64,000 nucleotides of DNA, from positions 186,001 through 250,000 of the forward strand of contig JBLDXI010000038.1 of the NCBI GenBank assembly GCA_047495785.1, given 5' to 3'. The notes under the pieces are model-generated. The model did not search any database. It was not told where the DNA came from and saw only the letters and a program-made list of their open reading frames with translations. Every line of letters starts with the position of its first letter. The stretch's first letter is position 1. Made by a program: the position numbers and the translations under genes. Positions 3,310 through 41,147 of this stretch are shown here, one piece after another. Source of the DNA: Lepidodermella squamata. Its lineage: Eukaryota; Animalia; Gastrotricha.

Positions 3310-4380
3310 GATTATGAAATGTTGAAACAATTTCCGGACGTTGAATATGCGGTGCTGTCGACGATTCGGTGATCAATTACTATTGAATGCGATTCGTTTA
3401 GCCTTTGTTTTTTTGAGCAAGTTACGCCCGAGTTTCTCCGTATAACGTTTGATAAAAATGCCAAGTAAAATTAAACAAAATGATGCCCCGTCACATAAAG
3501 GTGTAACAGCTTTTTCGAAAATATATTTTCGTGGAAATCTCGGCAGGAAGTTCAATTTCCTAATTACATACCATGTACCAAGCCACCGAGTTTCACCCAA
3601 TGACCAGATTTGTTAGATTTCGGAGCTCCTGTTCATAACATCGATTGACCTCATCGTTTCATGACTCGCGACTGGTGCCATCGGATTCTCCATCAAATTT
3701 CGCGCATTCCTATAGGCTGAAATCTGAAAACTGAATTCCGCGTTCCAGAGGCATGAACTCTTTAAGGGAAAAATTTAGAAAAATGTATGTCCCAAAATTC
3801 TAAATTATCATTATAAATCGATGAATCGACCAGTGAGTCCAAGAATAACACGTGGCCTGATAACAAGGACAAATGAATTTGGAAAAATTGAGTGGGTTCG
3901 GTGACCTTTCTCCAAGAATCGAGCCATCAATCGCATTACCAGTGATTGGGTGTTGCTATTAGCAACTTCAGCTTCAGGTCTCGGAGCACCCTGATACACC
4001 TCAAAGTTGTAGCAACAGCCTGATGCATCGCACAGCTCGAAAATGTTGATGCAAAAGGGGTGACTTTTGGATTTGATGTATTGCCTGAACGACAGCCGAC
4101 CTCGAAAATTCATCATAGATTCGTCGATAACCATGCATTTTGGCAGATTTCCTTGACAGTGGAAGTTCATCTGAAGCCGATCAAGTGTCGGTCAAATTTC
4201 GGCTAAATTATCGGTGGCTAACTGATGCTGAGCAGAATTGGGGTTTGCGAAGCAAATCGCAGTGCACAAAAGCTGGAACCTGTTCCGGCTCATCCGATTC
4301 CTTGAACCTCGGCTCCAGGACCAATAAGTAGAAAGATTGGCAACTTTTCCGTGCTCATGAGTAGCCTTATTCCAAACCAA
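3310..4380 (-). mobile_element. Decayed piggyBac (PGBD4-like) transposase fragment
   Basis: Fragments MSRNRFQLL and IDESMMNFRGRLSFRQYIKSKSHPFCINIFELCDASGCCYNFEVYQG...LVMRLM..FLEKGH are typical of DDE_Tnp_1_7 transposases; broken by stops and frameshifts; no intact TIR/TTAA pair found, so boundaries are approximate. Confidence 0.85.
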
Positions 4381-37313: not shown

Positions 37314-37806
37314 ATGTTGTCTAGCAAACCATCCATGCTTACAAGGGCTGTGAAATTTATTTGCTCTAACAGAGCCTTGTCATCAGCGGCCAAGGAAGAA
37401 ATCAAGTCTATTGAATTCAGCCAGTTGAAGTCATTGCTAAATAATGGCTCGAAAAAGCTAGTAATAATTGACGTAAGAGAGCCCAAGGAGCTCATTAGCG
37501 ATGGAAAGATTCCTCAATCAGTCAATATCCCACGTATGTTTCCTATTCCTGGATTATATTTAATTGTTAAGTGACGCTCCTTCAGTTGGGGAATTGAAAT
37601 CGGCATTTTCGCTGCCGAAGGAACAATTCGCTGAAAAGATGAAGACAGCTAAACCCGAGGACTCCGAAGCAACCCTTGTTTTGCACTGCAAAATGGGCAT
37701 ACGAGCCATGAAAGGTGCCATGATGCTGAAAGAAATGGGCTACAAAAACATCTCTGTGTTTCCTGGGGGATTTAAAGAATGGAACGAAAAGAACCCTCAA
37801 AGCTAA
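37314..37806 (+). CDS. Single-domain rhodanese/sulfurtransferase (TSTD-like), probably mitochondrial
   Basis: IIDVREPKEL..GKIPQSVNIP|LGEL; active-site loop HCKMGIRA; FPGGFKEW; one intron 37534-37586; N-terminus rich in Ser/Lys/Arg, resembling a transit peptide. Confidence 0.9.
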
Positions 37807-37883
37807 TTTTATATTGAAGCAAGGAGACCGCAGGCTTTCATTGAGCTGTGATTTTTTTCATGATTATTAGCGAGTTACATTGA

Positions 37884-38670
37884 ATGAATTGCGACACTGT
37901 TACCTTGGGCAATCATAGCTTCGAGGAAATTTATGAAACGATTGTGCTGCCTGATGGAGAGGACGTGAACGAATGGATAGCTACGACGCGTATGTTTGAT
38001 AGCTTCTTATTTGAATGACAAACCTCAATAACTATTTGTTGCAGTCAGTGATTTATTCAATCAAGTTTCCATGCTATATGGGACCCTGTCCGAATACTGC
38101 ACAGAGAGAAGTTGTCCAATAATGGCTGCTGGTATGGTTCGCGAATATGCATGGGCTGAAAATGGGAGCGATCAACCGCTGTCTTGCCCAGCCCCCAAGT
38201 ACATCGACATGTATGTATCTCAAATCCAGATACTTTTTTTTATCTTTATTATTTTGAAGATTATTTACTTGGATGCAAAACTTGCTTGACGACGAAAGTT
38301 TGTTTCCGTCAAAAGTCGAATCAGCGTTTTCCCCAACTTTCCTGGAGACAGCCCGATCTATGTTTAAGCGTTTGTTCCGAGTTTTCGCTCACATTTATCA
38401 CAATCACGCTGACAACTTGATTAGTTTGGGGCAGCTGAAGCATGTATGTTTGACATATTAATAGTTCCAAGTTTGAAAGTTGTTTTTCAGGCTAACACTT
38501 CTCTGCGCCATTTTGTATTATTCGTGCGTGAGTTTTCACTGGTTGACGAAGAAGAACTGTCCGTCCTCCAGCCTTTTATCAATCGATTATGCGGTCTCCC
38601 CAAGCCTCCAGCTGCCAGTCATGGCGAAATTAGTGTCATGGAACAAAATTCGACAATAGAGAAACCATAA
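37884..38670 (+). CDS. MOB1: MOB kinase activator (MOB1-like), short N-terminus
   Basis: VLPDGEDVNEWIA, FNQVSMLYGTLSEYCTERSCPIMAAG, PAPKYID, LDDESLFPSK, FKRLFRVFAHIYHNH, NTSLRHFVLFVREFSLV; three short introns. Confidence 0.88.
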
Positions 38671-38763
38671 TTTTTGATTTTTTTTTCTATTTATCGCCGT
38701 CTCACATATGATATGAAAAAGCATGTGTATCTCAAATTATTCCCATATCTGAAGCCGCGTTGC

Positions 38764-38809
38764 AATAAAGAAAGCGCCCAGGAATGATTTTCTTCAATGC
38801 TTTTTATAG
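38764..38809 (+). promoter_or_regulatory. Poly(A) signal followed by an unpaired 3' splice-acceptor-like site
   Basis: AATAAA at 38764-38769, then T-rich ...CTTTTTATAG ending at 38809, 3 nt before the LYRM1 ATG (38813). Confidence 0.45.
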
Positions 38810-38812
38810 TAT

Positions 38813-39294
38813 ATGAGCGCGTTAAAACCTCAAGTTTTAAAACTTTATCGACAATCTTTGCGGCTTGCTCGTAATTGGCAGGCTGCGTCTGGGCGTGAAA
38901 AGGATACGGCAGCTGAGCGAAATTACATCGCCGAAGAAGCGAGAAGTCTTTTCCGCAAAAACAAAGACGTGAGTTAATTATTTTCTATATTACGTCGGAC
39001 CCAAGGCTTAATTGACTTGTAAAGTTGGTAAACGAGGACGATATTCGCCGGCACATTCTCGAGGCTGAGAGCAGGATAGCCCTAGGTAATATTTTGCGCA
39101 TTTTATTTGCATTAGTAATGCTATTCTTCCGCCGCTTAGCTCTTCACTACAAAAATCCTTATCCAAGACCTGTTCATTTTCCCCAGTGGGACGCTGTTAA
39201 ATCTGCTTCCAATCTATCAGCCGTTCGAGCCAAGATCAAACGAGCCCAGCCGACTTACGTCTCGTCATATTTCGAAGAAAAATCGTCTAAATGA
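38813..39294 (+). CDS. LYRM1: LYR motif-containing protein 1, 123 aa
   Basis: Exons 38813-38968, 39025-39085, 39140-39294: VLKLYRQSLRLARNWQAASG...YIAEEARSLFRKNK...LHYKNPYPRPVH, matching LYRM1. Confidence 0.92.
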
Positions 39295-40106
39295 CGCTAT
39301 TTTTGCTATGCGAAGTCGCTGTAGTGTGGATTGTTATCTCACTTGTTCTGTACATATATTTTTTACTGACGCAAGATGCAAGGTTGAAGTCACGTTTTAA
39401 CGAAAAATTCAATAACTATCTTCACGTCACTGCTCATCCTGACGATGAGTGTATGTTTTTCGGACCACTGATTAGCAATTTGCTGCGTTGGAAAGCCCAA
39501 TATCGCCTGCTATGTCTTTCTTCTGGAAATTTCTACGGGGTCGGTGATATTCGTCGCTCAGAACTTTTCAACGCAACAACAGAGCTTGGAATCGCCAATG
39601 ACTCAGTTTCGTTGATTGATGACCCTCGTTTGCCAGATTCCATGCGTGAGAGTTGGGCGACAGACGCTATTCTTGAATTCGTTGACGGAAATTGCGACAA
39701 ACTCGCCAAATCTTCGCCGAGGAAAGAATTGACTATGATCACGTTCGATTCAATCGGGATTACTAGACATCCTAATCACACATCTCTTCACCGCGCGTTG
39801 TCTTCGGCTGAGTGCGAAAAACGGCGCTTACTAACTCTGGTTTCGATTCCATTCTTCGTCCAATACACCGGTTCATTGACGTGTTTACCGATACTGACCT
39901 TGGTTTGGCTGTGGAAGAAACTGACGGCTTCCAAAAATGGCAACGCCTGCATCGTGGTTGCCTCGCCGAAGCAATGGCTGCAAACGATTCGCGCTATGCT
40001 ATGTCACAAATCTCAGATTTTCTGGTTCAGAGTGCTTCATCTTATGCTATCTTCCTATTTACTTGTGAATGTAATCGAAGAAGAGAACGTTGAGAATAGC
40101 GAGTAG
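39291..40106 (+). CDS. PIGL: N-acetylglucosaminyl-phosphatidylinositol de-N-acetylase, intronless
   Basis: N-terminal transmembrane anchor, TAHPDDECMFFGP, LCLSSGN, ITFD..GITRHPNH, AMLCHKSQIFWFR. Confidence 0.93.
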   Translation: MTLFLLCEVAVVWIVISLVLYIYFLLTQDARLKSRFNEKFNNYLHVTAHPDDECMFFGPLISNLLRWKAQYRLLCLSSGNFYGVGDIRRSELFNATTELGIANDSVSLIDDPRLPDSMRESWATDAILEFVDGNCDKLAKSSPRKELTMITFDSIGITRHPNHTSLHRALSSAECEKRRLLTLVSIPFFVQYTGSLTCLPILTLVWLWKKLTASKNGNACIVVASPKQWLQTIRAMLCHKSQIFWFRVLHLMLSSYLLVNVIEEENVENSE

Positions 40107-41147
40107 AGAGTTGAACCTATTAGCTGAAAAATAATATTCATATCGGTAAACAAAAATAAAACGTACGTTCAATCGTGTATTATCATTATTTTCGGGTTTG
40201 CGTGCCAGTTGTAGCAATTTTTTCTCACTTCGATGCGTGTTTGTTTCTTGACACCCATCCATCTGTATCTACCTACCAGTGCGCGGGCCGCTGTTCATTA
40301 GAACTAACACGATTAGAACGCCGCGGAACACGTTTTTACGTGATAACCCAATAATCACGTTCATTTTTGAACAGCCACAAGATGAGCTGAGGTGCTGCTA
40401 TACCGGCGAGTAATTGAGAACAAGCGATACGCGTGTCTCTTTCAAATACGTGTAATAATGATAACTCCTGCGGGGCGAATTCGGCAAACATAGCGCCACT
40501 TCGCTGTCGGGAGGCGCGTCTTCTTCCTGATATTTTTCGATTAGCAGTAGGCATTATTAATAATGCTTGATGCTAACTAGGCTCATCGACCACTACCTAC
40601 TAATTCGGCGTGCGGTGTTTTTGTGTTTTTCTTAGCTGGAGATCATTTTGCTGGCTTGTTTTGTTGGCTCACTATTTTACGCTTTCTGCCCACTAGAGAG
40701 AGAAGCGTAGCTTGCACCCACGTTCGCTAACCACAAAACGGCCCTCGCGCTTTTTATGCCCGTTCATCTAGGCGCGGCATCTCGCTGCCAGGTACTGCCG
40801 TGGTGCCAATATTACGCCCGATGACGGATGGTAACCAGCGAAAAAGCAGCTAAAACTACTGCGACTGTACTACCACTCGAACCATTGTATACATAATGCG
40901 CGCTAATAATAACCCGCTAGATGCTGAGTTTGTACAGACAGGCGGGGGCCGGCGCCCGGTTCGATCCCACTAGCATTGATTTTTTCGCTCGCCTTATTGC
41001 CACCACTGTTTAACACTTTGTTTACGTGTGTTGCTCTTTTATGAAAGACTGTACGCAACTTTGACTATTACGATAATATAATAATTCGGTTACATTTCGT
41101 GGCCCACTCGCGCCATAACGTATTGCTTTCCGGACAACAACAGTTTT

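Follow-up and report, generated by a model that had tools for sequence, protein, structure and literature searches.

In the gastrotrich Lepidodermella squamata, the gene for the LYR-motif protein LYRM1 runs directly into the gene for PIGL, and we think it rather likely that the two are expressed from one mature dicistronic mRNA on which PIGL is reached by leaky scanning. Both genes lie on the + strand of the window, the 64,000-nucleotide stretch (positions 186,001 to 250,000 of contig JBLDXI010000038.1) in which all coordinates below are given. The LYRM1 stop codon (TGA, 39292–39294) overlaps the PIGL start codon (ATG, 39291–39293), and the genes thus share the tetranucleotide ATGA. A preliminary description of this DNA had reported the overlap, and re-reading the exons and the open reading frame reproduced it to the nucleotide.

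LYRM1 consists of three exons on the + strand, at 38813–38968 (156 nt), 39025–39085 (61 nt) and 39140–39294 (155 nt), which sum to 372 nt and are separated by two GT..AG introns (56 and 54 nt). In cDNA both are spliced out, with joints at 38968/39025 and 39085/39140. Exon 1 (52 codons, with a donor that is used in cDNA) encodes the LYR motif at residues 11–13 and LFRKNK at residues 46–51. Searched alone against Pfam, it matched PF05347 (Complex1_LYR) at 33.5 bits, above the cut-off of 24.8. Exon 1 drew 226 relatives in an exhaustive profile search, and the best named among them are LYR motif-containing protein 1 from a bat, a whale and a crinoid, at about 56–64% identity. These named relatives also carry an HY.xPYPRP block, which the window encodes in exon 3 as HYKNPYPRP. 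Searches and counts for LYRM1 were done exon by exon, and its identity rests on the exon-1 search; a word search with the 89-residue read-through of exons 2 and 3 gave no matches. Many gene calls among the relatives continue into an intron straight after RKNK-like residues, a pattern which hints that the intron position is shared. The second intron (39086–39139, 54 nt) is in frame and stop-free and holds the sole extra ATG, which lies in the LYRM1 frame; its retention would add 18 residues and place an ATG on the scanning path.

PIGL is an intronless open reading frame of 271 codons (39291–40106, + strand) that matches PF02585 (PIG-L, GlcNAc-PI de-N-acetylase) with 64.3 bits against a cut-off of 28.2. 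We found 91 relatives, and the named ones are animal and fungal PIGL. Relative to its closest match, P0001, the motifs HPDDE/AHPDDECMFFGP and HPNH (the metal site, HxxH) are invariant. The identities that had been proposed for both genes were thus borne out, by Pfam LYR and PIG-L matches and by exon-1 neighbours named LYRM1. The PIGL N-terminus is hydrophobic immediately after the ATG, and the first in-frame ATG after 39291 encodes M55, inside the catalytic HPDDECM, so PIGL must start at 39291. A search of the 121-Mb genome assembly returned one match for PIGL and one for LYRM1 exon 1, and both proteins therefore probably depend on this locus. Looked up as an exact sequence in public assemblies, the PIGL protein had no match. 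The last exon of the combined unit (39140–40175) is ~1036 nt long; verified exons nearby measure 61–404 nt. With PIGL intronless, no exon junction lies 3′ of the LYRM1 stop, and we infer that the mRNA might be spared junction-dependent decay.

We looked for signals that could separate the two genes. Between 38650 and 40250, AATAAA occurs only at 38764 and at 40155, each time ~15 nt before an observed contig end, and a hexamer scan found neither AATAAA nor ATTAAA between 38770 and 40154. The overlap and the missing poly(A) hexamers leave no place for separate 3′ end formation, in line with the earlier reading that there is no room between the genes. The first of the two signals (38764–38769, + strand) serves the upstream MOB/phocein-like gene, whose stop codon lies at 38668–38670 and whose A-tails begin after 38784 in contigs from both cDNA runs, 15 nt past the AATAAA. 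From that poly(A) site to the LYRM1 ATG there are only 28 nt, and they contain a putative spliced-leader acceptor, a pyrimidine tract plus AG (ctttttatAG, 38799–38809, + strand), whose AG stands 25 nt past the MOB poly(A) site and 3 nt before the LYRM1 ATG. The motif TTTATAGTAT before the LYRM1 ATG is kept at the equivalent place in a related genome, described below. The second signal (40155–40160, + strand) precedes position ~40175, where a contig (record 9) ends without an A-tail and where the shared transcript probably terminates.

The RNA evidence comes from two runs, X1 and X3, which are recognizable as cDNA by their SMART adapter tails and removed introns, and it takes the form of assembled contigs, which fuse overlapping transcripts and lose rare forms. 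One X1 contig (record 3, 1186 nt) aligns to 38853–38968 and 39137–40123 with exon 2 between them; it has joints at both LYRM1 introns and spans LYRM1 exon 1, the ATGA and the sequence past the PIGL stop. Within the LYRM1–PIGL unit the X3 run covers just 39462–40175. Contig coverage has a gap at 38785–38852, into which fall any 5′ end and the opening 40 nt of the LYRM1 coding sequence. The proposal of one mRNA for both open reading frames is therefore upheld in part: a spliced contig crosses the junction, but contigs are no proof of one continuous molecule. The X1 run also joins the next gene upstream, which encodes a rhodanese domain, to MOB across a 77-nt spacer. Since that pair is bridged too and its first cistron is rich in ATGs (10), bridging on its own is weak evidence for a dicistronic mRNA. 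For the same reason we dropped, as strong evidence, the internal control that LYRM1 and PIGL are bridged and MOB and LYRM1 are not.

The arrangement is conserved. P0001, at 48% identity the nearest PIGL in the protein collection, is encoded on L001 and L002, a pair of nearly identical metagenome scaffolds. Both are collinear with window positions of about 33.2 to 46 kb (~13 kb) and keep the order rhodanese, MOB, LYRM1, PIGL. In L001, LYRM1 occupies 3535–3690 and 3739–3984; its first intron falls at the identical codon, and the second is absent. PIGL is again intronless. The L001 LYRM1 gene ends with TAG (3982–3984), and the PIGL ATG follows at 4001 after a 16-nt spacer. Third codon positions of LYRM1 exon 1 are only 36% identical between the two species, so the genomes are near saturation. 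Conservation in a related genome thus holds for the adjacency of LYRM1 and PIGL and for the ATG-free first cistron, but the ATGA overlap gives way to a spacer. Beyond these scaffolds, LYRM1 was upstream of PIGL at none of the 80 metagenome PIGL loci scanned. A locus from a skin metagenome (L013), which we do not regard as human DNA, entered only a bulk screen for LYRM1 and gave no match. PIGL was absent downstream of LYRM1 at three other LYRM1 loci within the sequence fetched; locus L008 ends too early for a judgement. In contigs L089–L091 there was neither a LYRM1 gene call nor an LYR Pfam match adjoining PIGL. Searching the ESM Atlas with exon 2 of the L001 gene gave no usable match.

Consistent with PIGL being reached by scanning, the first cistron is free of internal start codons. 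The preliminary description had found no ATG in any frame of the spliced LYRM1 coding sequence between its start and the PIGL ATG, and our exon-by-exon count agrees: the only ATGs in the LYRM1 exons are those at 38813 and 39291, the single further one (39118) lies within intron 2, and the tetramers created at the exon junctions (AC|TT and AG|CT) generate none. After the LYRM1 start there are 0 ATGs in 365 nt in the window and 0 in 415 nt in L001. The neighbouring coding sequences (rhodanese, MOB and PIGL) carry 0.020–0.026 ATG per nt in the window (10/440, 24/934 and 16/816); in L001 the counts are 11/408 and 20/789. As the sole null, this neighbour-gene density was rejected, since it overstates the contrast: exon 1 of LYRM1 has few ATGs elsewhere too, only 1–2 in each of three unlinked relatives.

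We computed the probability of finding no ATG under several conservative null models, which together gave 0.013–0.05 for the window and 0.004–0.015 for L001. Synonymous resampling with the protein held fixed gave 0.013–0.028 for the window and is uninformative for L001, since that protein has no residue pair able to encode an out-of-frame ATG. Residue shuffling combined with codon resampling gave 0.013 for the window and 0.015 for L001, and a first-order Markov model of the exons themselves gave 0.05 and 0.004. Methionine is absent from the exon-1 part in 46% of 137 relatives, which supplies an extra factor on these probabilities for internal methionine. As LYRM1 is intrinsically poor in ATGs, the depletion is moderate in each species, and as the two species share ancestry their P values are not simply multiplied. 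We read the ATG depletion in LYRM1 as genuine but moderate.

One earlier argument found no support. The LYRM1 start had been described as weak in context, and it does have T at −3 and −1 in both species. However, T at −3 is common to 6 of the 8 starts compared across the two species, the window's own PIGL ATG among them. The LYRM1 context is thus not demonstrably weaker than that of its neighbours.

From these observations we propose the following route. The shared mRNA would begin at or just before 38810, probably through spliced-leader addition at the AG at 38808–38809, and would end near 40175, so that single molecules would carry both open reading frames. Part of the scanning 40S subunits would initiate at the LYRM1 ATG and produce the 123-residue LYR-motif protein; others would bypass it and initiate at the PIGL ATG at 39291, which scanning could reach because no other ATG intervenes in any frame for 365 nt. 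On balance, a dicistron decoded by leaky scanning is the account we favour for the missing 3′ signals, the spliced contig, the kept adjacency and, above all, the ATG-free first cistron.

The main alternative is that PIGL is made mainly from its own monocistronic mRNA, generated when a spliced leader is trans-spliced to an acceptor within exon 3 of LYRM1. The long LYRM1–PIGL RNA would then serve LYRM1 only or be a precursor, and each pre-mRNA would yield one product, by analogy with nematode SL1-type operons. We regard this as unlikely, though it has points in its favour, and internal leader addition might also coexist with the dicistronic form. Candidate acceptors would be tccttatccaAG (39156–39167, conserved) or the AGs ending at 39186, 39220 and 39277. 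Acceptor-like AGs with their G at 39167, 39186, 39220 and 39277 indeed score as high as the verified cis acceptors, and contigs bridge rhodanese and MOB as well, hence bridging is compatible with processing.

The candidate at 39167 is the one that conservation singles out. Across the 45 aligned codons of exon 3, the AG at 39166–39167 is the only one common to both species; those at 39186, 39220 and 39277 are not shared, and the 120 nt that precede the PIGL ATG contain no acceptor-like site common to both species. It falls within the 27-nt block at 39145–39171 that encodes HYKNPYPRP and is identical to L001 3805–3831 at 26 of 27 positions, with third positions of identical codons matching at 8 of 11, which is no more than mildly unusual (P about 0.04, our own estimate). 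The block contains a pyrimidine-rich stretch that ends in this AG. No peptide of the family is more conserved than HYKNPYPRP, however, and the block's conservation may be ordinary; judged from its sequence, it could be an internal splice acceptor, another RNA element or chance.

Against internal leader addition, no loose end of the kind a foreign leader would leave was present at 39140–39300 in contigs of either cDNA run, although contigs drop rare forms. The nematode SL1 and a bdelloid leader, which are uninformative about this animal's own leader, were absent from the genome. In both species, LYRM1 also lacks ATGs 5′ of all the candidate acceptors in exon 3, a property for which internal leader addition has no need; the probability of this is 0.07–0.18 for the window and 0.035 for L001, in each case before a factor of ~0.46 for methionine. 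That two saturated genomes both keep the cistron free of ATGs, including these parts, which a PIGL-only RNA would not contain, favours leaky scanning.

Termination–reinitiation, in which ribosomes finishing LYRM1 at the TGA would restart at the overlapping PIGL ATG, appears very unlikely. The stop/start overlap ATGA in the window would suit it, as a spacing of few bases favours reinitiation (PMC11291117). The overlap is not conserved, however: the relative has TAG, 16 nt and then ATG. Nor does reinitiation need an ATG-free first cistron, yet one is found in both species. An open reading frame of 123 codons, the length of LYRM1, is long for reinitiation without a dedicated element, and an Rfam search over 38600–40300 had no matches to a known RNA element. 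Least probable of all, and in our view hardly credible, is that these are two ordinary genes, with a PIGL promoter and transcription start inside LYRM1 and a contig that is an assembly merge or a read-through RNA: contigs do not show single transcripts and the X3 coverage begins only within PIGL, but the arrangement and the ATG-free state are conserved, the adjoining junctions are far too tight for promoters (MOB, for example, is polyadenylated just 28 nt ahead of the LYRM1 ATG), and LYRM1, with no poly(A) signal before 40155, must include PIGL in its mRNA anyway.

The LYRM1–PIGL dicistron would sit in a tight same-strand run, rhodanese, MOB, LYRM1, PIGL, in which the first two junctions carry a pyrimidine tract plus AG and the third would be left intact. 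Both the MOB and the LYRM1 ATGs have such a tract and AG 3–13 nt upstream in both species. The junction of MOB with LYRM1 has a poly(A) signal and site before the downstream ATG; at the junction of LYRM1 with PIGL the genes overlap and no poly(A) signal precedes the PIGL ATG. Tentatively, then, one gene run may use two decoding modes, with leader trans-splicing at the first two junctions and leaky scanning at the third, though we hold this with less than even confidence. The rhodanese cistron is ATG-rich (10 in 440 nt), so its junction with MOB probably works differently from that of LYRM1 with PIGL.

Some details of the upstream genes were recorded alongside. The rhodanese-domain gene (37315–37533 and 37586–37806) ends 77 nt before the MOB ATG at 37884, and one cDNA contig spans both. 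The spacer contains a short open reading frame (ATG at 37860); its TGA and the MOB ATG overlap as TGAATG. Also in the spacer is a strong pyrimidine tract plus AG ending at 37871. The layout between rhodanese and MOB is likewise present in L001, where the spacer measures 128 nt. Within MOB, the X1 run uses a donor at 38210 (GT..AG, skipping 49 nt), and in an X3 contig 38209 is joined to 38260 with one additional C, which probably represents the X1 intron altered in assembly or alignment.

LYRM1–PIGL appears to be a further instance of a mechanism described before in green algae and flies. Leaky-scanning dicistrons have been described in Chlamydomonas, Auxenochlorella and, as stoned/Snapin, in Drosophila; their short first open reading frame is depleted of ATGs in all frames, the spacer is tiny or absent, and some algal pairs have overlapping stop and start codons (PMC11291117). 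They are conserved over deep divergence, and small mitochondrial assembly factors (PET100, COX factors, SDHAF3) are frequent partners (PMC11291117). LYRM1–PIGL resembles them in its short ATG-free first cistron, minimal spacer, deep conservation and mitochondrial partner. It differs in being another gene pair in another animal lineage, situated inside a run that looks like a spliced-leader operon; leaky scanning is here proposed, and the first start is not demonstrably weak in context.

Parallels also exist in function. PIGY is a component of GPI-anchor biosynthesis, PYURF is mitochondrial, and the upstream protein of MIEF1 has an LYR motif. PYURF–PIGY and MIURF–MIEF1 are characterised human bicistronic transcripts (PMC13303939), and like LYRM1–PIGL on our reading they pair a small upstream protein with a downstream enzyme on one transcript. 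The genes are unrelated, with PIGL in place of PIGY and LYRM1 in place of the MIEF1 microprotein, and the origin is independent; these human transcripts are functional parallels of LYRM1–PIGL, not relatives. In our literature search, LYRM1 was paired with PIGL only in gene lists.

Two further kinds of system invite comparison. The window shares with the spliced-leader operons of nematodes and tunicates a tight same-strand run, and the junction of MOB with LYRM1 follows their pattern: a poly(A) signal and site are followed, after 25 nt, by a pyrimidine tract plus AG, with the ATG 3 nt further on. The junction of LYRM1 with PIGL departs from it, as there is no intercistronic region, poly(A) signal or ATG-adjacent acceptor, and if the pair were resolved, one of its mRNAs would be lost. 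The overlapping stop and start codons recall the UAAUG of influenza B M1/BM2 (segment 7) and calicivirus TURBS. Unlike at these viral reinitiation sites, the overlap in LYRM1–PIGL is not conserved in the relative and no upstream rRNA-complementary element was identified; ATG depletion, which LYRM1–PIGL has, is not a feature of the viral systems.

To our knowledge, neither leader trans-splicing nor leaky-scanning dicistrons have been published for Gastrotricha. If one gene run does use two decoding modes, dicistrons decoded by scanning could be a regular, selected part of gene organisation in this phylum. On the reading that we favour, LYRM1–PIGL would be a conserved animal dicistron that couples a mitochondrial LYR-motif protein to an essential GPI-anchor enzyme, independently of human PYURF–PIGY. 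Leaky-scanning dicistrons and spliced-leader operons would then coexist in one transcription unit, which is relevant to the evolution of polycistronic expression in compact animal genomes. There would be a practical consequence as well, since annotation pipelines would otherwise overlook one gene of the pair, fuse the two or cut them short.

PIGL is also found tightly behind differing partners in several compact genomes. In an A-tailed contig of 31% GC from an unrelated organism (L003, Logan ERR6338309, 31–1484), a Rab/Arf-like open reading frame of 231 codons with many ATGs is followed by PIGL 11 nt on. In a contig from a different organism (L090), a PEMT gene ends 6 nt before PIGL.
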